Below, one piece after another: positions 430-25,901 of a stretch of DNA of 25,901 nt (the stretch's first letter is position 1; every line of letters starts with the position of its first letter). The position numbers were made by a program, and so were the translations under genes. Where the stretch lies: positions 1 to 25,901 of the forward strand of contig NW_021835661.1 in NCBI RefSeq assembly GCF_006345805.1, read 5' to 3'. The stretch comes from Octopus sinensis (taxonomy: Eukaryota). The notes under the pieces are model-generated. The model ran no database searches. It saw only the letters and a program-made list of their open reading frames with translations, and was not told the DNA's origin.

Positions 430-1722
430 GAGGGGCGTTCAATAAGTAATGCCCCTGACCCACTTCCCATAGCAGTAGAGCAACGAAACTTGGCACAGTT
501 ATTAGTCTGTTTCTACATAGGAACCACCCAGAGTTACGCATTTCTCCATTGTTTGATGCAGCTCTGGAGACCGTTTTTGTAGAAGACCCCAGCTTGGTCC
601 TCCAACCTCAAGGGACTTCAGAAATCAAGGCTGGATATCATCTGGGAAACGCTTTCCTTTCAAAACAACTTCATGATGGGGAGGGAAGAGGTGAAAATCA
701 GAGGGTGCAAGGTCAGAAAAGTAGTGGGATGGGGGAGGAGTTCATAGCCATACGCCTGTGCTTCTGATCTGGCGACAAGCGAGTTGTGGACCGGAGCGTT
801 GTCCTGCAGGAGGAGGATGCCTTTGCTGATCTTGCCCCGCCTCTTGATTTTGATAACTTCTCTTAATTTCCTCAAAAGTGAAGCATAATAGGCTCCTGCA
901 ATTGTGGTACCCTTTGCCAGGAAATCTGTCATCACTACTTCGTCCTGGTCCCAGAAGACTGTGAGCATGACCTTGCCAGCGGAGGGCTGCACCCTTGCCT
1001 TCGTTGGAGGGGGTGAGTCACGGTGCTTCCACTGCATTGACTGGGCTTTGGTCTCTGGATCATCGTGATGGACCCAGGGTTTCATCCTGTGTAATCAGTC
1101 TTTTGAAAAATTTTGACTCATCTTCTTGGCACATCTCCAAATTCACCCTCGAGCACTCGACGCGTTCTTGCTTCTGGAAAGGTGTGAGCAACCTGGGAAT
1201 CCATCTGGCAGACACCTTTTGCATATGCAAATGGTCATGAATGATAGTTTCCACAGACCCGGTACTAATCTTGACCTCATGGGCTATTTGGCGAATAATT
1301 ATGCGTCGATCTTCCAAAATGGCAGCCTCAACTTGACGGACAGATGCCTCATCAATGGCAGAAGGGGCAACCAGATCTAGGAGCTGTTTCCACAGAGTTC
1401 CGACCATGTTTGAATTCACGATGCCAGCGTTTTACAAGGTCATATGATGGGGCATCATCACCATAAGTTACTTTCATTTCATCAAAAGTCTCCCGTGGTG
1501 TGCGTCCTTTCAAATACAAAAACCGGATCACTGCTCGACACTCAACAGGCTCCATTTCACACTTGACTCGGTTCAAACACCTATAAATCAGAAACCACAA
1601 TTAATTCAGAGCTGTAATTTGCCACTTACTCTATAGAGATATAAATGATTGCACATGCAAAATTTCAGCTAGATCAAACAACTGCAAGTGGGTCAGAGGC
1701 ATTACCTATTGAACGTCCCTCG
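429..1722 (-). mobile_element. Full-length mariner (Tc1/mariner, DD34D) DNA transposon, 1294 bp
   Basis: 37-bp TIRs: cgaggggcgttcaataagtaatgcccctgacccactt (429-465) versus the reverse complement of 1686-1722, with 3 mismatches. TA on both sides (427-428, 1723-1724). Internal transposase on the minus strand. Confidence 0.95.
502..1555 (-). pseudogene. Frameshifted mariner transposase (~350 codons)
   Basis: N-terminal HTH region MEPVECRAVIRFLYLKG...W...FK.GR.S. Motifs SARWIPRLL, ITQDET/WVHH, LLQDNAPVH and, after a small indel, DLAPSDF, giving D-34-D spacing. Split over ORFs 1352-1600, 1060-1419 and 660-1085. Confidence 0.92.
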
Positions 1723-2110: not shown

Positions 2111-2606
2111 AAGTTTTATCTTAATAATTATGATGCGCACTCTTAACCTTACTGTCTCTATTTTTCTAACCTTACTGACCCCTCTCGCTCATTCTTCATT
2201 CTTTCTGGTTTTCTCTACCATTCTCTCCCTTTCACCGTTCCCTTTCTCTTATTCCTCCTCCTCCTCCCTCTCGTCGCTGACATGTGACCAGAGTCTTTCT
2301 GTCTTTCTGACCACAGCCTTCAACAAGTATAGATGGCATCCTATCCCTTTCTTATACCGTTGTTCTCACGCGTTTAAAATAATTTTTCTTTCGTTCGGCT
2401 TAACAGCCCTTATATGTATATATATATATATATATATTAATAGTTATCGCCAAGCTAATATGGTAGTCCATAAATATAAGACTAAAGCTGTCGTTGATTA
2501 GCTCCAAGAGGCCATCGCCTCCAGCTAGCTATATGACACACGAACCTGTGTCCATTATAACCTTCGAACAGGGGAGGTCAGCCGCTTCCCCTTGCTGGTC
2601 AGACAT

Positions 2607-2647
2607 CTGCAGATATGTTTCTGGGTATTTGCCCTTTATCAATGCAG
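2607..2647 (-). ncRNA. Minimal type I hammerhead ribozyme A1 (probably impaired copy)
   Basis: Minus strand reads ctgca TTGATAA aggg caaata ccca GAAA catatc tgcag. It has an A-A mismatch at the base of stem II and the stem III palindrome is broken (ACATAT). Confidence 0.7.
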
Positions 2648-2996
2648 AATAGCCAGACCTAGCAGGCGTCGCTACTAACCGTCTGTTCGAAGGATTATTT
2701 ACCTAATTTCAGTGGAATACATCCACTGGTTTTCAAAAATAGAAATATTAAAATTTCTAAGTCTCTCTAAGGGAGACTACGGCAGCGGTACTGGATATTA
2801 ATAGTTATCGCCAAGCTAATATAGCAGTCCATAAATATAAGACTAAAGCTGCCGTTGATTAGCTCCAAGAGGCCATCGCCTCCTTAGAAATTTTAATATT
2901 TCTATTTTTGAAAACCAGTGGATGAATTCCATTGAAATTAGATAAATAATCCTTCGAACAGACGGTTAGTAGCGACGCCTGCTGGGTCTGGCTACT

Positions 2997-3037
2997 CTGC
3001 ATTGATAAAGGGCAAATACCCTGAAACATGTCTGCAG
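2997..3037 (+). ncRNA. Minimal type I hammerhead ribozyme A2 (U3-A8 core variant), predicted cleavage after GUC at 3032
   Basis: ctgca TTGATAA aggg caaata ccct GAAA catGTC tgcag: 5-bp stem I, 4-bp stem II and palindromic ACATGT stem III. Confidence 0.85.
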
Positions 3038-4749
3038 ATGTCTGACCAGCAAGGGGAAGCGGCTGACCTCCCCTGTTCGAAGGTTATAATGGACACAGGT
3101 TCGTGTGTCATATAGCTAGCTGGAGGCGATGGCCTCTTGGAGCTAATCAACGGCAGCTTTAGTCTTATATTTATGGACTGCCATATTAGCTTGGCGATAA
3201 CTATTAATATCCAGTATCGCTGCCGTAGTCTCCCTTAGAGAGACTTAGAAATTTTAATATTTATATATATATATATATATTATTTACTTATTTATTAGGG
3301 AATAAAAATCCCGGCATTACAGGGGTTCAAATTATTCTCAATGAGGAAATATACATGTTATTTAGAGATAGTAGTCCCCTTCATCCCACCATATAAAAGA
3401 ATTTTAATTTAATACTTACTACTCATTTCTCTGCTATACGTGTTTCTTGAGGTTCTTTTACGGTTCCTTAAGCACGCAGTGTTTTACAGGAACCTTTCTT
3501 AAAATGTAACCCCAATTATCAGGCCTCTAAATAACATTATCATAGTTCGATACCAAATACTATATTTTAATTTTAACAGATAAGTATGTGTAAACAGGTT
3601 CACTGGACCTTACTGTGCAAGCCATAATTCAAATCAAATAAAATTAATAAAAATGAAAATATTAAAAAAAATGTTTAATTTACAAAACTAAATTCTCACG
3701 TAACTTATGAATGTAAACATTCATATAAAATTAATAATATGTAGGGATAAAAATAAAATATATACTTGTGATGATATAATAATGAAAGCAATGCCAAATT
3801 CATCAAGCACAAATCACACACACGCACACACACACATACATACACACACAAACGCTCACAAACACACACATATTTACATATATATGTATGTATGTATACA
3901 TAGGTATAAGTTAGAGGTGTTTAAAACCTCTAAGAGATAGTTAAATCCAAAGGCGCTCCTAGTGATTACCTGCGTAGGTATAGTCCTTGGTAAAAGGTAT
4001 ACGGTGATAGGTAATTCGGCGGGTAAAACGTAGTTTAAATTATATGCAAGAAGAAAATGGAGCCCCATTTTCAGCAAGAGCTAGAGTTAACCCCCTTCCT
4101 TTACACCGCTGTTGAAAAGTTTAGCCAGAATAAACACGTGGAAAATATGCGCTTACTTAAACTTGGACTACAGATCAAAATAACCTCCATCTTACATCCA
4201 CTTGACACACACCTATGATATCATGGCGTTTGAATGTTAATATTAAGTTAAAGCTGTCTTGAAACAGCTCTTGAGATAAAACTTTACATGAGTCTTATTT
4301 TCTGCTTTGTTTTATTTTGTCTCTCCTCCTAAAACTAGAAACCCTTAAGTCTTATTCTAGCATAATTACACCACCAATGGAGACAATGGTGCAATATCAA
4401 TATCAATATATGTAATAACAGAAACATCAAAATCATCATAACCGTTGAACCTTTTCACAAGTTCAACAATACAAGAATGAAGAATAACTCAGAATAAGAA
4501 GAATCCAGAATATATAAACCATTCACAGACAACAAGTATATCAATCACATATTCCCATCATCAGCTGCCGAACAGATACCATTATGGTTTCAACAGCTGG
4601 GTAGCACCATTCAGTCAAGTGATGTCAGCAGCTTAAGAATTCATAGAGAGGTAGCAAGAGCGAAACATTAGTGTAATTTACACCAGCAATATATTACAAA
4701 TACTAACATCGAATATAAACAAAATCGTATTAAACCTTAAAAGTGATAT

Positions 4750-10796: not shown

Positions 10797-11039
10797 TTAA
10801 AAGGAAATACTAAATATAAAAAGAAACTTTGCCAAGATGACTTTTGGCAAAAATGTCGATGACATAACCCCCCCACACACACACACACAACATACACGCA
10901 TATACATATATGTACGTGCTGAAGTACGTATTATGCGTAAATGATTTGTGTATATACACCTTGATACATATAAATTATTTATAAGCATGTGTTCATATGC
11001 AAGTATGTGTGTATACATAAATATATACATACATGCATG

Positions 11040-14085: not shown

Positions 14086-16038
14086 GAAAATTTTAAGTTT
14101 TTAACTTTGCAATTATATCTCTACAATTTAAAATTTTAAAATTACAGATTGCTTAAGAATGTCCTCTGGGTGGCGACCACCGCGGACAGCTGGTTGACCC
14201 ACAACAAGCCCTACCTTTGAATGACAGTACACCGGCTGGACCCCAAGACCCTGCTCAGAGGACATCACACCTTTGATGTTCTCGCCCAGGCCATGGTAGA
14301 TATCCATTACGAGTTCCATCTGCAAGACAAGGTGACTAGGACCGCGACAGCGGCAAAAACTTTGTTAATGTATTTATGCAGCTTGCTAGACATTCTTGAG
14401 GTTAATGCCGATCCGGACGTGAAGGGCGTCGAGGATGTGAACCTGGACGTGGATCCCAAGACTGGGGATGTGGACGAAGTTGAGTACGTCTCTGTTGATG
14501 TTATCTTTGACAAGTCCAGAGGCCTGGGCTTTCAAGTACAACTCCCAGTGCACATGAAGTTCGCAGCCCATACCATCAACTTGGTAGCCAGCGTGGATGC
14601 CGACAAGGTTTTTGACAGCGCTTCGGCCTACAGGAAGGCCATGTCCAAGGCACAGTGGCTGTGGAATCTGTAGAGCCACAGGAACAGTGGCGGCAGACAA
14701 CATTCTGGACGCGTTGAAGAGAAGGCTGATTGTTCCCAACAGTATCAGATGGCTCTATCTATGACTCTGCTGTTGTCCTCAACAACTTATTGAAGAAGAA
14801 TAGGGGAGCTGTCCACAGGGTGATGGCACAACTGAAGCTGCAGTCCTACATTGATTCTGATGTCGGCTTCCTAACAGAGTACGGCCAGGTGATTTCTAAT
14901 GTTGCCATGACCTTGAATAAAATCCAGTGGGAGGACCAAGCTTATTTCGGCAGCTTTCTATCAACTGTAGCGATTACCGTCTTGAAGCTGAAGGAGGCCA
15001 AGTTGAAACATCTCCTGTACTGAAGTCCTCTAGTAGATGCAATACTGGCAGGCATCCCGAGAAGGTTTGAACTCCTCCTAGGAGACCTGGAGTGGCAGCT
15101 GGCCGCCGCCTTCGACCCCAAGTTTCACCTGTTCTGGCTGGAGCAGCATAATAACAGCCAGATTAGCTGAGTGACGAACGCCATGGAGACCGTCGTAGAG
15201 ACAGCCCTAATGGAGACCAAAGAGGAGGGCAGGAGCACCACTAGCAATGAGGATGAGGAAAATGATTTCTTCAGCAATATCACTCGGTTCCGATAGAGCA
15301 GGAGCTACAGGTCACTGAAATATAAGGCGCAGAACTTGGTGAAGACCTGGCTGGAGCCCGTCTTGAAGGAGGTCCTGACTGAAGTCGCCTTTTTGGATGA
15401 ATAGGGCTTGATCAACCTGTTCACCAAGTATAACACCGCCATTCCATCCAGAGCTGCAGTTGAGCGCCTATTCTCTATAGGCAAAGATATTTTGAGGGCC
15501 AAGAGAGTCAGATGGTAACTTTAAGAGGCTGATGTTTATGAAGAACAACCAGCATCATATAAAGGCAATGGAGAAGGCCTAGTCAGATTAGTACACCTTA
15601 ATCATCATCAGATCTTGGCATGATACCTATGCTATACTATACCTTTATGATTCATCTAATACTTTCTGTACAGTAAATAAGGTGTATGTTGAACAAAAAG
15701 CTAATGATTAATTTCATTTGTTCATTTAATTATTTATGTACACCTTGATCGTCATCTGATCTTGGCATACTGTACCTTTTTGGAAAGCTCTATGTCTAAG
15801 CTACATGAAAGTTTCAGTTCTCTACGTCTGTTTTTAGGGGTTTTAGAGCAAAAAAAAAAAAAAAACAAAACTGAAACTAAATTCATATGACAGAAGTTAG
15901 CGGCTATCATTTAGCGTTAGCTTCCAGTAATCATTTTTTTTTTTTTTACCTTTTTAACGGTTTAGCGTTCGGAAAGCTAACCCTTTTAGTTAGTAGATTA
16001 ATAATGAGGCTAACTTTTTCGTTAGCTGTACCCACCAC

Positions 16039-17077: not shown

Positions 17078-17698
17078 TATTATATATATATTATATATAT
17101 ATATATAATATATATATTATATATATATATATAATTAAGATTCAGTTGAATTAGGTACTTAAATGAGGCACTTTGCTAGTTCGGTATAGTCCGCACACCT
17201 CAACAATAAATATCATTTGAATATTGAATATGAAGACTTCCTTGTTCCTAATATTCTGTCGTGTGTGCAGACAACTCACCCCAACTAAGTGAAGATATCT
17301 GCTCTTGGTAAATCCGACATGTACTTTTTATATAAAGGTTCTTTCTATAGTATTTCCGAAGTGCAGATTCCAAGTTAGGTGAAGGGAATATAAATAAGTA
17401 ACGAAGATGTACAGGTGTCAATTCATTGACACCTGTATATCTTTGCTATATATATATATATATATGTGCGTGTATGCGTGTGCGCGCGTGTCTATCTATC
17501 TATCTATATATATATATATATATATATATATTAATAATTTATCGCCATACTAATATGGCATTCTTATAAAAATAAGAAAAAAGCTGACCGCTTATTAGCT
17601 CCATGAGGCCATCGCCTTAAGTTAGCTATTTGATACAAACTGTATCCATATAACCTTTGAACAAGGGAGGTCAGTCGCTCCACACTACTTGGCCGGCA

Positions 17699-17739
17699 GC
17701 TACAGACGCGTTTCGGGTATTGCCCCTTTTCAATGCAGC
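17699..17739 (-). ncRNA. Hammerhead ribozyme B1
   Basis: Minus strand reads gctgca TTGAAAA gggg caata ccc GAAA cgcGTC tgtagc. It has one C fewer in stem II than the other copies. Confidence 0.8.
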
Positions 17740-18003
17740 GTAGCCAAACCAGTAGGTGTCGCTTCCTAAATCTTTATTATGATTATAAAAATCTTACAGA
17801 GATAGTACATTACAATACAAAACATAATTACAAAAGTTTACGTTGTTCGTTTGATATTTACATATGTTGATTATTGATTATGATACTAGACTTTACTTTT
17901 CTCCTTTTTTTTTTAAATTAAAAATGATTTTGGCCAGCTAGGTATATCACAGTCAGGATTCTTACCCGACAGCCTAAGAGCCCAGAGACTATTTTCTCTC
18001 CCT

Positions 18004-21000
18004 TCATGATGACCAAGCAGGGTTACTCACACCCACCTTTTTTATCACATCCTTCCATCGATTCACATACTTTTTCTGTGTCAGGTTCCTCTTCTCTAAA
18101 TCCATCTTGCTCTTTAGATGGTATCTGAAGTATTTTAACATACCATATCCAGAGACAAAGGTTCCTGACACCAAACCTTCCAATCTAGTTCTCCACACAC
18201 ACTCTTTCAGTACTGCCACCGTACAGTGAAAACAAGCCTCACCTTCCTTTGAGAGTCCAGCTGGCGGTATCATCTTTATTATAGAACCAGCCGATAGCTG
18301 TACTCGTCCCAGATGCGACAACACGTGTTCTACGTAACTTATTAAGCCTGACAGCTCCTGACAATGTACAAAAGCGTGCTGGACGGTTTCATCATCGTCC
18401 AACCCACATCTTGGACATGTCGGTGGCACTGACATTCCATGCCTATATAACTATCGCGAACAGGTAGAGCATTCCTATAGCACTGCCAAGTCAGGGATTT
18501 TTGGTAATTGTCCAATACCCCGGCTTGAAAGTCTTCTTAAACAGGTCGGATAGTTGATCCTCATCGAACCCCAGAGCCCCTCTTAGGACGTCGTCATTTT
18601 TTGCCTCTACCATCCTTCTATAAAATGTCGAGGTGGTATTCCCGCAGCCGGCTTTGCCTATCTTGTGGATCAGCCAGAGTGCCTGTCGGCACTCTTTCTG
18701 CCATAAAGTCAGGTTCCGTCTTTTAATGAAACCGGGTTTAAATCTCTCCATAGAGTCCGGTTGCGGGAAGAAATTATCTGCCAGCGGACTCCACACCTTA
18801 TCACCTTCCAGGTGAAACCAGAGATGTCTCAGTCTCAGCGCATGCCTGCGCATCATTAACCAAGGCATCCCCAGCCCACCCTTTAGTGGTTCCTGGCAAC
18901 ACACGGAGCGCCTTACAAGTGGCTTTCCTCCCTTCCACAAAAAGCGGAAAAGGAGTCGATCCAACTTGCTTAGCCACAAATCGGGGCAAGGCACGACAGT
19001 CAGGCGATAGGTGATTACAGATGCTATAAACACCTGTACCACCTCCGCCCTCCCTTTCAAGGAAGATGCCTTCCGAACCACTCCCGAACTATGGCTTCGA
19101 CCTTGGTCACTACCTCGCTCCAATTTTTCTCCGTCTGGGAGTCTGAACCAAACCAAACTCCAAGCAATTTAACAGGACCATCTGTCCAGTGTCCAACAAC
19201 ACTGGACGATATCGGCTTGTTCCTCCAGGTGCCGAGGCGCAAACCAGTGGACTTGTCCTTGTTAACTTTTGCCCCAGCCACCGCTTCGTATCTTCGGAGA
19301 GCACCTTCTACACGAGTTAGTTGTGCTTCGTTGGACACGATGAAGGTGACGTCATCCGCATACGCAGAAACGACTTACCGCATCCGATTTCATTAGGATT
19401 GCATCTCACCGTCTCCAACTTCCGCAGCAATGGCTCAAGAGCCAAAACGTACAGGAGAGGGGACAGGGACATCCTTGACGAACTGAACGCTTAATCGAAA
19501 ACGGTTCCGTTAAGTAACCGTTTATCTGGACTGTGGACTTGATACCGCTGTACATAGCTGATATCCACCCGCGAAAGTCAGGACCTAGCCCAGCCGCTTC
19601 GAGAACCGTCGCCAGGTACTGATGATCTACCCTATCAAATGCTTTACTTTGGTCTAAATGGACCAATGCCCCTCCTTTGCCGGCTAATTGCCCAACCCTG
19701 TCTATAGTGTAGCGTAGAAGGTGAAGATTATCTTCGATCGACCTGCCTGGGATTGCACATGTCTGTGCCTTTCCGACAAGTTTTTTCCATGACGACCTTC
19801 AACCTTTCTGCTAACACCTTGGCCAAAATCTTTAACTCTACATTAAGTAGAGTTATGGGCCTATAATTACTAATATTATCCCCCTTGCTCGGGTCTTTCT
19901 GGATCAGCGTCACAACTCCCCGCTCACAGAACTGGGAATCCTCCCATTCTGTTGCCAGTTTGCGTAGACGCTTGCCAGTATGTCCCCGAACAAGTCCGGC
20001 ATACAACAATAAAACTCATAGGGCAGACCATCCAGTCCCGGCGACTTTTCCCGGGCGCATTCAGCCAAAACCCCTCTTACCTCCGCGGGAGTAATCGGTC
20101 CTTCACAGCGTTTCCGCTCTGCTTGGCGAGAGCCGAGGCCCACCAGCTAGGAAGTTCTGTAAGTCCTCCCCTCGCTCGAGTGGATCGCCCTCCCCAAACA
20201 ACCGAGCGAAATGCTGTTGAAAGACCTTCTGTATCTCCTCCTGTCCATAGATTTTGCGTCCCTGTTCGTCAGTTAAAGACTTAATAGTGGACTTTTTGCC
20301 CTTCTGACTCTCCACACGACGTGCCCATCCGGCAACATTAATACCTTCTCGTTTCACTGCACGTAGCTTAGCTCTGACTCTACATCCTTCATGCTTGGCA
20401 TTGAGGTGACGGTACAAGATCGTTCTCTCTGCTAACACTCTAGATGCACAGCCAGATCCCATTGCCTCGTCTAAGTTCTTAACTAAATCGCCCTCTATTC
20501 TAGTCCTATCTAAACTTAGCTGGTTGCTAAATCTAATGGACTCCAAACGGATGGCTCTTTTGAGGGCGATCCACCATCTATTATTAATGATGGTTCCACA
20601 TAATGCCCTCTGGACTAATTCCATAATCCGTTACGGAAAGCTTCACAAGCCAAAATAGACTTGTTCATTTTCCAGTATCCGGTCCCTGTCTATGGCATTT
20701 ATCTACATGTACCTCACACGTCACTAATTTGTGATCCGTGTAAGGCACAATACAAAATTGTGGACAGCTAATGCTATTCCTATCTCGTTCTTTAACAAAT
20801 ACCCTATCTATATACGATCTGCGTGAGCCGTCATTGTTACTCCACGTCCACTGTGGAATGCTCGGCTCATCCATTCGAAACCGATCTACTAGATTAAAGC
20901 TCGTCAGTAGACCCTTAAGGCAAGGATTCCCCCTTCTATCAGACGAGCCCACACTATCTATCCGCGCATCGATGATAGTGTTGAAATCCCCTACCAATAC

Positions 21001-21399
21001 TACCGTTTTAGACGTCACTAGAAAGTGCTCCAAGTTCCGATAAAACCAGTCTGCCTACCCTCATTAGGAGCATAAACAGCTACCAACCTGAAGGACTGCT
21101 TACTTACGTGAATTACATCGAGGACAACCAGCCTACCTTCTGGGTCCATAAAGACAGTACTTACCTGTAAGTCCAAGTTCTTCCTGATAAGGACTGCCAC
21201 GCCTGCACTTCCTCCTCGGCTAGGAGAAATAAATTTCTCGTAACCATTGAGAAGATGCGAGAACGCTTGGGTTCCTCTCATCTTGGACTCGGTGACAATG
21301 GCTACATCTATTCTGTGTGTCCTGAGGTCGTCCAGCAAGCAAGCCTGTTTTCCATTTCGACCCCATTCCACGCACATTTATACAGCCCAACTTAATCAT
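18004..21399 (-). pseudogene. Tx1 ORF2: APE endonuclease, reverse transcriptase and C-terminal Cys/His motif (~1130 codons, about 10 frameshifts as assembled)
   Basis: INVRG, VYAPN, VGDFN, SYIDRVF, TDHKLV, GYWKMN, KSPGLDGLPYEFY, NYRPITLLNVELKILAK, DQSKAFDRVDH, VRQGCP, YADD (19351-19362), GAKVNKDKS and CPRC...ETVQHAFVHC. Confidence 0.95.
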
Positions 21400-21422
21400 C
21401 GATGAATGAAGAAGTTTGTTAC

Positions 21423-22908
21423 TTACGGTTGTGAGAGGGAGCATGGCAGCTTTTGTCTGCCTGCTTCCCCCACACTCTCCGTTGTTGCTGGGCATTTAAC
21501 CGGCGTTGCCACCGGGCTCTGGGATGGAGTGGCTGCCGGGCTAATATTCAATTTTCCAGCTATCACCTCTTGTGTGACATCTTTAATCAGGTTGTCCCTC
21601 ACGTGTAGTTGGAAGAGTCTCTCCTTCCATTCCTCCTCTCCAACCTTCGCATACCTCCAATCCGGGTTTTTTTCCGATGGTTTGAAACATTTTATGTTTG
21701 GTTTCGCCTTTATGTACCAAACTACTCTCTCGTTTTTTGTGTTATAAGCAATGCACCTGTCGGTTTTTTTGAATCCTTTTAAAGTTGGGGGCTGGGGTTT
21801 AATGAAATGCTGGCCTACAAAAGTAGTGCCAGCGGGGTGGGATTGGATATTTTTTTGTGTTGTTCTGCTGCGTTTGTTTTTCTTTTTGTTTGGGGTGGGG
21901 AGTCCGGGGTATTGGATTTCTTCCTTTTGTTGGTTACGGTCGTATATTCCATTACTTCCAGTTCTTTTCCATTTGATAATTATTTTCCACCTCGTTTTCG
22001 TTTTCGCTTTGTTTTCCATTCATTTTCTTTTCCTCCTTTTTGACTTTCATTTTGCTTTTTCCGGGTATTCTCTTTTGTTGTTGCTGTGATGTCTGCTTTG
22101 TTCTCCACAGCGGTTTTGAATGGGGGCATTAACGGGTTTTTTTTTTTTTGCACTCTGAGCGGACGTGACCCTTCTGCCCACATTTGAAACATCTGGGCCT
22201 ACGTCCCTCAACCGATACCCGCGCAGTGTGTCCATCCCCCACGAAGACCCTGTCTGGCAAACTCTCCAGCGTTGCATTGTCAGCTTGAACGATCATTTCA
22301 AGCTGCTGACCTTTCCAAAATTTTGCCTCTTTCATCCTCATGTTTAAAATGTTTAATTTCTCTTCTACGTCGAATACGACCGCTGTTGCTGCCCACATTA
22401 CATCGTAACCTGTTGGTATATCCTCTATTGTTATCTTAGCTGTTCTGCGCCCTAAGTACGTGGGCAGCAACAGGATGTCTGCACTCTTCAACGTTTGAGT
22501 TGAAATTTCCTTCGCTATGCTAGCCGACTCGAAATGCGCTTCAATAGTAGCGCTTCTCTCACTCCTCGGCCAACATAGCGAACCTTGTTCCAAATTGGTG
22601 CCATGCACCGTTCTACCAATTCATTTCTTACATCTGCAATCTTTTTTTCCTTAATATTATATACCTTATAAATTACCGTCTTCTCACGGATTGCTTGTAA
22701 GGTGTCAGGGGGCGGTATTATTCTCGTTTCTTCTTCCATTCCTTTGTATGAACTTTCTGAACTTGAAGAGATCCTCCATTGTTACTTCCAGTTCTATAAC
22801 ATTGCCTCCAACGGCTTCCGAAAAACTTTGTTTCTCCTTTGTATCCTTTTGCTTTATAACTTCTCCCATCTCGGGAAAATCAGAATTTGACGTTAAGTCA
22901 AGATCCAT
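21423..22908 (-). pseudogene. Tx1 ORF1 (gag-like, CCHC zinc knuckle), frameshifted as assembled
   Basis: CFKCGQKGHVRSEC (CX2CX4HX4C) followed by a basic, Lys-rich region. Ends 23 nt before the ORF2 ATG. Confidence 0.85.
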
Positions 22909-23430
22909 AATAAATGCAAGTGACTTGTCACAAGAGACAAGATAAAATTAGATCCACACTGAATTAAAGTTCATATATAAAAAGAAATTTTCTACCCCGA
23001 AGGGCGAAAATTACTTTGTTTCACAGTTAATACTCCAAAAATTGTACGTGTAAATCCAGAACAGAACGAACTAACATAACAGCTTACAGCGTAAAATAAT
23101 CCGACGTAATCCAAGAAAAATCAGTAGTTGTCGCTTCCGACAATCTCTGTTCAAAGGTTTTATTTACCTAGCTTCGGTGGAATACATCCACTTGTTTTCA
23201 ATAATAGAAATATTAAAATTACTAAGTCTCTCTAAAAGAGAACAACGGCAGCGTTCCCGGAAAATATTATTTATCGCCATACTAATATGGCATTCTTATA
23301 AAAATAAGAAAAAGCTGACCGCTTATTAGCTCCATGAGGCCATCGCCCAAGTTAGCTATTTGATACACAAACTGTATCCATATAACCTTTGAACAAGGGA
23401 GGTCAGTCGCTCCACACTACTTGGCCGGCA

Positions 23431-23471
23431 GCTACGACGCGTTTCGGGGTATTGCCCCTTTTCAATGCAGC
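23431..23471 (-). ncRNA. Hammerhead ribozyme B2
   Basis: Minus strand reads gctgca TTGAAAA gggg caata cccc GAAA cgcGTC gtagc, with a 1-nt deletion in the stem I 3' strand. Confidence 0.8.
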
Positions 23472-23785
23472 GTAGCCAAACCGTAGGTGTCGCTTCCGAC
23501 AATCTCTGTTCAAAGGTTTTATTTACCTAGCTTCGGTGGAATACATCCACTTGTTTTCAATAATAGAAATATAAATTACTAAGTCTCTCTAAAAAGAACA
23601 ACGGCAGCGTTCCGGAAAATATTATTTATCGCCATACTAATATGGCATTCTTATAAAAATAAGAAAAAAGCTGACCGCTTATTAGCTCCATGAGGCCATC
23701 GCCCCAAGTTAGCTATTTGATACACAAACTGTATCCATATAACCTTTGAACAAGGAGGTCAGTCGCTCCGCACTACTTGGCCGCA

Positions 23786-23827
23786 GCTACAGACGCGTTT
23801 CGGGGTATTGCCCCTTTTCAATGCAGC
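23786..23827 (-). ncRNA. Hammerhead ribozyme B3 (intact)
   Basis: Minus strand reads gctgca TTGAAAA gggg caata cccc GAAA cgcGTC tgtagc. Confidence 0.87.
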
Positions 23828-24062
23828 GTAGCCAAACCAGTAGGTGTCGCTTCCGACAATCTTGTTCAAGGTTTTTATTTGAATGCCATATTAGTATGGC
23901 GATAAATATATTTTCCGGGAACGCTGCCGTTGTTCTCTTTAGAGAGACTTAGTAATTTTAATATTTCTATTATTGAAAACAAGTGGATGTATTCCACCGA
24001 AGCTAGGTAAATAAAACCTTTGAACAGAGATTGTCGGAAGCGACACCTACTGGTTTGGCTAC

Positions 24063-24103
24063 GCTGCATTGAAAAGGGGCAATCCCCGAAACGCGTCTGT
24101 AGC
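24063..24103 (+). ncRNA. Hammerhead ribozyme B4, predicted cleavage after 24097
   Basis: gctgca TTGAAAA gggg caat cccc GAAA cgcGTC tgtagc. Confidence 0.87.
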
Positions 24104-24356
24104 TGCCGGCCAAGTAGTGTGGAGCGACTGACCTCCCTTGTTCAAAGGTTATATGGATACAGTTTGTGTATCAAATAGCTAACTTGGGGCGATGGCCTCA
24201 TGGAGCTAATAAGCGGTCACTTTTTCTTATTTTTATAAGATGCCATATTAGTATGGCGATAACTATTATTTTTCCGGGAACGCTGCCGTTGTTCTCTTTT
24301 AGAGAGACTTAGTAATTTATATATTTCTATTAAATATATATATAGATATATATATA

Positions 24357-25901
24357 GGCAGGCATCAGTCTTCTCGAGAGGCCATGGATCTGCGCCCCAA
24401 GAAATCGTGTCAGCTGCTGATGGTGGTGCAGCATCTGTTATAGGGCTCACGCAGAGTGGCAGTGACTTATACACCGGTTGCATTTGAAGAGCTCTCTGCC
24501 GGCGCTCCTGAATTTTCCTTCCGTCGAGTGCGTTTTTCTTTGGTGGCGAGTTCCTTCCGCTTTCTTCATCCCCTTTTGCAGTATTTGTCTTCAGTGTGGG
24601 CAATCATTTGCAACCTTAACCCATCTCAGGACGACCAGATCAAGCGATTTTATATCCCTTTAACAGACGTCCTTGAAACGAAGATGAGATCGTTCTCCTG
24701 CTCAGGCGCCGGTGGCCAATTCCCCATACGGGAGTCTTTTGAGATCCTTCTGTCTGGCATGAGACGTACATGACCAAGCCAACGCAAACGACGCTGCTGG
24801 AGCAGGGTGAGTATGCTGGGTATCTTGGCTCAGTTGAGGACTTCGGTAATGTGGTCAGCCCACTTGATATCCAAGATGCGTCTCAAATTACGAAAGTGAA
24901 AGACGTTGAGACGCCGTTCCTGTCTGGAGTAGAGATTCCACGTCTCACTACCATAAAGTAGCGTAATAAGGACGCACGACCTATAAACAGCAATCTTGGT
25001 GTTTGCAGCCAGATTTTTGTTTTCTCAGACTCTCTTTGTGAGCCTGGCAAATGTGGAGGATGCTTGTCCGATTCGCCTGTTGATCTCAGGGTCCAGAGAG
25101 AGGTAATCAGCGATGCTAGAACCGAGATAGGTGAATTGATGGACTACCTCCAGCTTGTTGACGGTAATGGTAAAGGCATGGGGCGATTGACACGTTGGCC
25201 CATTACTTGGGTCTTTTTCAGACTGATAGACAGACTGAATCCCTGACAGACCTTTGAAAGTTTGTCCACGAGGTGTTGCATTTGCTCGTCAGGGTGCGCT
25301 GTCAGTGCTGCATCGTTCGCGAACAGCGTTTCTCTGATGAGTGCTTGGCGAACCCTGGATTTTGTTTTCAAAATCTGGCAAAACCTGGCGAACTCTGGAT
25401 TTTGATTTTGTCGACAGACTAAACAGTTTGCCTCTTGATCTGGTGTGGAGGTGAACACCATCAGTTGATGTCCCAAATGCATGTTTCAGCTTGACTGCAA
25501 AGAAGATGCCAAACATGGTCAAGGCAAGCACATGGCCTTGCTTCACATCGCTACGTATGTTGAAAGCCTCCGAAAAGAACCATCAAATTGAACGACGCCT
25601 TTCATGTCCGCGTGAAATGATTGGACAATCCTAAGGAGTCTTGGGGGGCAGCCAATCTTGAAAAGGATTTTGAACAGGCCATCTTTGATGACTATGCCAA
25701 AAACCTTTATGAGATCGATGAAGGTGATAAAGAATGGTTGCCTTTGCTCTCGGCACTTCTCCTGTAGCTGTTGGCGAGAGAAGATCAAGTCGATGGTGGT
25801 GGGTTTTGATCGGAAACCGCACTGAGATTCGGGTATCCTCTCAGCGATTTCTCTGTAAGCCTGTTTAGGGACACGCGGTCAAAATCCTTCCCAGCGATGC
25901 T
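24357..25901 (-). mobile_element. RTE-clade LINE, 3' portion (RT domain to 3' end), degenerate and cut by the window edge
   Basis: SQCGFR..TTIDLIFSRQQLQEKCREQ, FIDL..V...GLFKILFKIGCPP, VKQGHVLALTMFGIFF, LFANDAAL, ISLKKTQVM, FTYLGS and downstream RLRWLGHV. Ends in (TGCC)2 followed by (TA)n. Confidence 0.9.

Follow-up and report, generated by a model that had tools for sequence, protein, structure and literature searches.

A Tx1-like LINE nested in one unit of a retrozyme-type hammerhead repeat of Octopus sinensis

A LINE lies inside one unit of a small tandem repeat

We analysed a 25,901-nt stretch of the Octopus sinensis genome (assembly GCF_006345805.1, contig NW_021835661.1, positions 1 to 25,901), hereafter the window. 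Positions 17767-23121 on the minus strand are occupied by a 5,355-bp retrotransposon without long terminal repeats (non-LTR), a long interspersed nuclear element (LINE), which lies inside one unit of a small tandem repeat carrying hammerhead ribozymes. The boundaries of the LINE were set by alignment to the empty site. We found that the element is flanked by two copies of a 17-bp target-site duplication (TSD) that are identical at 16 of 17 positions, CAGTAGGTGTCGCTTCC on the plus strand at the LINE 3′ side (17750-17766) and CAGTAGTTGTCGCTTCC, with one G>T difference, at its 5′ side (23122-23138). When 17767-23121 and one TSD copy were deleted, the joined flanks were colinear with the sibling units, gapless at the junction, and made up a normal 356-bp unit. 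The empty site was represented by the 22-mer GTAGGTGTCGCTTCCGACAATC, which was present at 23483-23504 and 23840-23861 and, inverted, at 24029-24050, while the control of 100 shuffles gave 0 expected matches. The same 22-mer also runs across the LINE 5′ junction (23124-23145), where it is formed by the TSD copy and the right flank. The flank-joining alignment and the positions of the 22-mer thus bear out the initial annotation, which had proposed a precise LINE insertion in a repeat unit, with a 17-bp duplication and three empty sibling sites.

The LINE has the same orientation as the ribozyme strand of its host unit (unit A), the minus strand. Downstream of the LINE 3′ end (17767), hammerhead helix I begins after 27 nt (17739), and the predicted cleavage site follows at 62 nt (17705|17704). 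The co-orientation with the ribozyme and the distance of about 27 nt from stem I had also been recognised earlier, and all coordinates given at that time were correct. In itself, the nesting of a LINE in a repeat, clean TSD included, is nothing out of the ordinary.

Anatomy of the LINE

The LINE begins with a 5′ untranslated region (UTR) of 213 nt (22909-23121, minus strand), upstream of the ATG of open reading frame 1 (ORF1) at 22908. The frameshifted ORF1 region (21426-22908, minus strand) carries the CCHC zinc knuckle CFKCGQKGHVRSEC within 22132-22608 (Pfam zf-CCHC, E 1.8e-5), and neither an RRM nor a Transposase_22 match was obtained for ORF1 in the Pfam search. ORF2 (18004-21401, minus strand) encodes an apurinic/apyrimidinic-type endonuclease (APE) at ~21377-20668, a linker, a reverse transcriptase (RT) at ~20000-19060 with a YADD motif at ~19360, and a CCHC finger at 18435-18007. 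The endonuclease was detected by Exo_endo_phos (Pfam) on two pieces, 21377-21021 (E 1e-5) and 21033-20668 (E 1.5e-6), and the RT by RVT_1 (Pfam) at 19666-19409 (E 7.5e-7) and, more weakly, at 20009-19731. For the finger, the pattern CPRCG...H...C is visible, the zf-RVT match is weak (E 0.005, below the Pfam cut-off), and PF13966 is present in relatives of the LINE. The 3′ UTR of 237 nt (17767-18003, minus strand) carries an AATAAA 6 nt from its end; the sense strand ends ...AATAAAGATTTA, and neither an A-tail nor a simple-repeat tail was found at this end.

The frames of ORF2 were mapped by tblastn with two protein queries (P0001 and P0002). In the assembled sequence, ORF2 can be read through only with 11 frame changes and ORF1 with at least 2, and no unambiguous nonsense codon was found. 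Among the sibling repeat units (17537-24335), 1-bp indel events are about as many as substitutions. The assembly looks indel-prone, because this ratio among siblings is unusual for real divergence, and the LINE frameshifts without a clear nonsense codon also suggest it; the element may thus be less damaged than its assembled frames imply. Its earlier description as full-length therefore holds for the complete layout, but not for the reading frames as they stand in the assembly.

Two arrays of the host repeat are present in the window

The host repeat has a period of 356 bp with 95% matches (Tandem Repeats Finder) and a GC content of 0.413. In the array carrying the LINE, the portion of unit A on the LINE 3′ side extends over 17537-17766 (minus strand) and contains hammerhead copy A (17699-17739), in which the assembly lacks one C of helix II. 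The remainder of unit A together with units B and C occupies 23139-23880, with the ribozyme sense on the minus strand and hammerheads at 23431-23471 (B), where one base after the cleavage site is lacking, and 23786-23827 (C). It is followed by an inverted, head-to-head copy D (23880-24335, ribozyme sense plus) with a hammerhead at 24063-24103, a predicted cleavage site at 24097|24098 and the inverted repeats I1-I5. A second, LINE-free array of the same family (~78% identity by blastn) is located at 2444-3266, on the plus strand at 2444-2880 and inverted at 2883-3266. It contains one intact hammerhead with the U3-A8 core described below (2996-3038, plus strand) and one degenerate copy (2606-2648, minus strand). 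The arrays are small, of about 2 and about 4 units, each including the head-to-head inverted copy, and 11% of the non-LINE part of the window consists of retrozyme DNA. In both arrays, the direct copies begin at the same unit position on the left and are followed by an inverted copy that ends at the same position (~293-295) on the right, and (TA)n is found on both outer sides of both arrays (2412-2437, 3262-3282, 17493-17531 and 24338-24357). Next to the LINE-bearing array, a fragment of a different non-LTR RT, with a weak RVT_1 match and unrelated to the LINE, runs off the window on the minus strand (24400-25901), and its 3′ side adjoins the (TA)n.

Animal non-LTR retrozymes have been described as ~170-400-bp tandem repeats of low GC content with one type I hammerhead each (PMC7229834). 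We found the same features in the octopus repeat, namely the 356-bp period, one motif per unit and the GC content of 0.413. Taken between successive cleavage sites, the 356-nt monomer is predicted to fold into a long rod closed by helix I (z = -5.1). We conclude from these sequence features that the host repeat is a retrozyme-type element with a U3-A8 hammerhead whose cleavage is predicted, and it is a new member of the animal non-LTR retrozymes, carrying an already published core variant. Head-to-head tandem/inverted structures and an insertion bias for (TA)n have been described for Penelope-like elements (PMC8557442). According to a 2026 preprint, animal retrozymes derive from the pseudo-LTRs (pLTRs) of Penelope elements, and vertebrate retrozymes were placed with these pLTRs. 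The tandem/inverted, (TA)n-flanked layout of both arrays fits this recent proposal, and the retrozyme of the window looks like a Penelope-type non-autonomous element.

The hammerhead fold is backed by covariation between the arrays

Reading the minus strand of a first-array unit by eye, we identified the hammerhead GCUGCA-UUGAAAA-GGGG-CAAUA-CCCC-GAAA-CGCG-UC^UGUAGC, and the second array carries UCUGCA-UUGAUAA-AGGG-CAAAUA-CCCU-GAAA-CAUG-UC^UGCAGA. In this architecture, helices I and II comprise 6 and 4 bp, and helix III consists of a single A-U pair capped by a palindromic tetraloop; such helix sizes are those of the standard metazoan type I hammerhead (PMC4209133, PMC7229834). The core, UUGA(A/U)AA ... 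GAAA ... UC, departs from the conserved CUGANGA ... GAAA ... UH only in that C3 and G8 are jointly replaced by U3 and A8, and this covariation has been published for the Penelope-associated hammerheads of Schistosoma (PMC4209133). A canonical-core reading, CUG...UGA starting from GGCUACG, was tried and rejected, since its 5′ core segment would be 12 nt long instead of the 7 nt of a hammerhead; with UUGAAAA, all helices and the covariation are accounted for.

A type I descriptor written to allow either core (C3-G8 or U3-A8) gave three matches in the window, at 24063-24103 (plus), 23786-23827 (minus) and 2996-3038 (plus), and any match at all in 1 of 300 simulated windows. Copies A and B were missed by the descriptor through single-base gaps. 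Across 17 pairs, 97% of cells are paired, and four pairs show compensatory changes between the arrays (distal helix I, proximal helix I, helix II and the palindromic loop 3). From the first to the second array, G-C is replaced by U-A in the outermost pair of helix I and by A-U in the closing pair of helix II, A-U is replaced by G-C in a distal pair of helix I, and loop 3 passes from CGCG to CAUG and is still palindromic. Within the core, the arrays differ at N7 only, which is the free position of hammerheads. Each compensatory change counts as one event, because two lineages are compared. When the partners were slid by 1-3 columns as a control, no compensatory change was found. The three-helix hammerhead fold, as read from the two arrays, is thus backed by covariation. 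Hammerheads with a single-pair, palindrome-capped helix III have been reported to cleave as dimers (PMC4209133, PMC7229834), and we infer the same mode of cleavage for the hammerhead described here.

Affiliation and relatives of the LINE

We placed the LINE in the L1 superfamily because the best solved-structure match of its stitched ORF2 was human LINE-1 ORF2p (E 2.4e-57); R2 proteins were matched at 1e-22. The features of this superfamily were all found in the element, namely APE and RT in ORF2, a C-terminal CCHC motif and a TSD as the footprint of target-primed reverse transcription (TPRT). An ORF1 of CCHC type, as opposed to the Transposase_22 type of mammals, agrees with membership of the Tx1 clade according to PMC5203782. 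Judged by these sequence features, the LINE is plausibly Tx1-like, and Tx1 clade is a reasonable label for it.

The LINE adds a new member to the L1/Tx1 group. When the stitched ORF2 or only its RT region was used as a protein query, the relatives retrieved did not exceed 57% identity over ORF2 and 65% over RT, and exact-product look-ups for two ORFs of the window returned no record. A second copy of the LINE was not found by blast search within the window. A metagenome scan with the last 24 nt of the LINE returned 7 contigs, all of them unrelated AT-rich DNA, and nothing was found when prokaryote-genome and viral contigs were scanned with the hammerhead core, a degenerate core, a unique 32-mer of the 3′ UTR and the target site. 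The RT region of the LINE is 47% identical to a protein of Acanthosepion pharaonis. The closest relative with a readable 3′ end is the locus L015 (JGI 3300045642, Ga0486131_03187; 1746-2105), with 65% amino acid identity over the RT query; it ends ...AATAAAAGAAATC and is followed by (ATT)n up to the contig end, which is either a microsatellite target or a repeat tail. Two more distant relatives, L004 and L005, with ~40% identity to the LINE, end ...GAAATAAA, and their flanks are mutually unrelated.

Other relatives (~40% amino acid identity) stand in head-to-tail tandem arrays on two contigs from different samples, L002/L003 (ERZ21867824 ctg88761c) and L006/L007 (ERZ25071366 ctg14421c), with periods of ~6.8 kb and ~6.5 kb. 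The sequence between the tandem copies yielded no hammerhead in either pair, nor did the descriptor scan of the relatives' loci L001-L007 as a whole. Scanning of L015 and L016 with the descriptor gave a single match, at 10826-10870 (minus) of L016 (Acanthosepion pharaonis CAHIKZ030005532.1), ~2.5 kb downstream of the LINE relative. This match, obtained with a relaxed descriptor, has the canonical core CUGAUGA...GAAA...UC and a non-palindromic insert in helix III, and is probably due to chance. In blastn searches with both retrozyme unit types, no unit was found in L001, L002, L004-L006, L015, L016 or two 20-kb loci surrounding close mariner copies (L017 and L018).

Insertion into the retrozyme monomer and alternative explanations

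We consider it likely, with a probability of roughly 60%, that the locus records one nested insertion by TPRT into a 356-bp retrozyme monomer, the default being a chance landing in an abundant repeat. The nick positions were deduced from TPRT geometry. The first nick would be made on the window plus strand at GCTTCC^GACAAT, and the freed 3′-OH at 17766 would prime cDNA synthesis from the LINE RNA end ...AAUAAAGAUUUA. A second nick on the minus strand at CCTACTG^GTTTGG, 17 bp away, would give rise to the 17-bp duplication. The insertion lies within the long arm of helix I, with the predicted cleavage site 62 nt further downstream, and the downstream ribozyme is intact because the duplication restores this arm. 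A chance landing in the retrozyme would not be a rare event, since retrozyme DNA accounts for the 11% of the non-LINE window mentioned above.

Several observations weigh against this reading, some bearing on the nature of the target and others on chance as the cause. The Rfam hammerhead models gave no match at the gathering score, nor at E<=10 on 1.26 kb or on 101 nt, and the sole Rfam matches were spurious miRNA models on the inverted repeat. We attribute the failure of these models to the U3-A8 core in place of C3-G8; since a U3-A8 hammerhead family gets no Rfam match, surveys based on Rfam models would under-count animal hammerheads. The identification of the host repeat as a hammerhead retrozyme in the initial annotation is thus upheld by the fold, the covariation and the tandem layout, but finds no echo in Rfam and rests on our own analysis. 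With regard to chance, the unit around the GC-rich nick site is AT-rich, with many T-rich runs, and the site does not resemble the L1 TTTT/AA consensus, so that the LINE endonuclease may have a sequence preference of its own. Both junctions are precise, and many Tx1-clade families are target-specific, with satellites among the listed targets (Tx1 phylogeny figure, PMC4494074). It is accordingly possible, and we entertain it tentatively, that the LINE family is target-specific with retrozyme monomers as its multicopy landing site, the endonuclease recognising the helix I-arm sequence around GCTTCC^GACAAT. The target is indeed a multicopy repeat of the kind reported for Tx1 families, and the LINE orientation matches the ribozyme strand; the LINE has no poly(A), and therefore recognition of its 3′ end is probably sequence-based. 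However, there is only one insertion, from which specificity cannot be proved, as the initial annotation itself had stated. No insertion is present at three identical sites (23483, 23840 and, inverted, 24029) or at two diverged ones in the second array. Furthermore, the closest relative with a readable 3′ junction abuts (ATT)n, the 3′ flanks of L004 and L005 are unrelated to each other and to the retrozyme, and no hammerhead was found in the loci L001-L007. A selection effect has to be considered as well, as a finding of this kind attracts attention when its host sequence can be recognised as a repeat. Altogether, the evidence on specificity from the relatives and the window is indirect, and neutral to mildly negative. 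Were the family specific, most 3′ junctions would read ...AAGATTTA|GGAAGCGACACCTACTG in the ribozyme orientation, including those of 5′-truncated copies.

An extension of the target-specific idea, which we regard as unlikely, is that the LINE family homes into retrozyme monomers and also uses the hammerheads of the target to form its transcript ends. The next upstream predicted cleavage site is at 23436|23435, and the two flanking ribozymes bracket 5,731 nt. Under homing, cleavage of a co-transcript of the array would leave 314 nt ahead of the LINE 5′ end and 62 nt behind its 3′ end, and the released RNA of 5,731 nt would carry 62 nt of target sequence as its 3′ tail. By pairing with the nicked strand of a further monomer, this tail could direct a precise insertion, and the 5′-OH and cyclic-phosphate ends could join into a circle, as reported for retrozyme RNA.

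Two further explanations fare much worse than chance nesting. The LINE might be the autonomous partner that mobilises the retrozyme, as a LINE does a short interspersed nuclear element, so that their association would reflect a shared life cycle, and animal retrozymes have indeed been described as non-autonomous non-LTR retroelements (PMC7229834). However, blastn (word size 9) with the LINE and its UTRs gave no hit elsewhere in the window, not even in the retrozyme units, and a partnership through a common 3′ tail was rejected as no similarity was found; moreover, the array ends at (TA)n with the head-to-head tandem/inverted layout typical of Penelope-like elements, the preprint cited above groups vertebrate retrozymes with Penelope pLTRs, and the LINE plainly interrupts a pre-existing unit. 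Given the lack of shared sequence, the LINE merely interrupts the array, and a partnership is highly improbable. We likewise give very little credence to an assembly artefact in which the LINE was misjoined into a collapsed repeat. The indel-prone look of the assembly, with sibling indels about as frequent as substitutions and 11 frameshifts in ORF2 without a clear nonsense codon, would suit it, but a misjoin would not yield a 17-bp duplication of the exact bases flanking the break, nor flanks that sum to one intact unit.

Comparison with known elements

With LINEs of the Tx1 clade and the L1 superfamily, such as Tx1L, Keno, Kibi, Koshi and the crocodilian Tx1-Mar, the octopus LINE shares an ORF2 with APE, RT and C-terminal CCHC motif, a gag-like CCHC ORF1, TPRT insertion with a TSD, the lack of poly(A) and the location in a multicopy repeat. 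It differs from the Tx1-clade elements in its candidate target, a ribozyme-bearing retrozyme monomer, which we did not find reported for any LINE in the literature searched. R2 sits in the 28S ribosomal RNA genes, and its own ribozyme, similar to that of hepatitis delta virus, processes the co-transcript. The likeness to R2 is an analogy only: here too a LINE is co-oriented with a multicopy host unit, presumably a transcribed one, and has a predicted self-cleaving ribozyme near its ends. However, the ribozyme of R2 is the LINE's own, whereas the ribozymes in the window belong to the target, and co-transcription and processing would apply here by analogy only.

The host repeat resembles the animal non-LTR retrozymes (type I, 170-400 nt; PMC7229834) in its 356-bp tandem units, one type I hammerhead per unit, GC of 41%, single-pair helix III with a palindromic tetraloop and rod-like monomer fold. 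In contrast to these, which have a C3-G8 core, it has U3-A8, and its arrays are very short, each with a head-to-head inverted copy. The hammerheads of Schistosoma Penelope-like elements (PMC4209133) share with it the exchange of C3-G8 for U3-A8 in an otherwise conserved core and the Penelope-type repeat architecture. They are, however, 'minimal', with a long helix II and a short helix I, and occur mostly as single motifs, whereas helices I and II of the window hammerhead, of 6 bp and 4 bp, have the size canonical for metazoans, and this hammerhead lies in tandem retrozyme units.

No report linking a LINE to a hammerhead repeat as its target was found in the literature searched, and such targeting would be a new hypothesis if confirmed. 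If the LINE family were found repeatedly in retrozyme monomers, ribozyme-bearing repeats would join the known targets of site-specific LINEs, and this would be a natural case of a target supplying a self-cleaving RNA that could define the transcript ends of the element. Homing with the use of the target's hammerheads, if true, would be without a reported precedent among LINEs, both for a ribozyme repeat as the target and for end formation by a ribozyme borrowed from that target.

Neighbouring elements

At 14221-15023 (plus strand), ORFs with the hAT-transposase-like motif KFAAHTINLV are present, for which Pfam gave no match at E<=0.01. At 660-1419 (minus strand), we identified a frameshifted mariner transposase. 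With 87% identity across 54% of the query, its closest named relative is a protein of Oratosquilla oratoria; the identity to an Octopus bimaculoides protein is 63%, and ENA contigs carry copies of this mariner with ~92% DNA identity.

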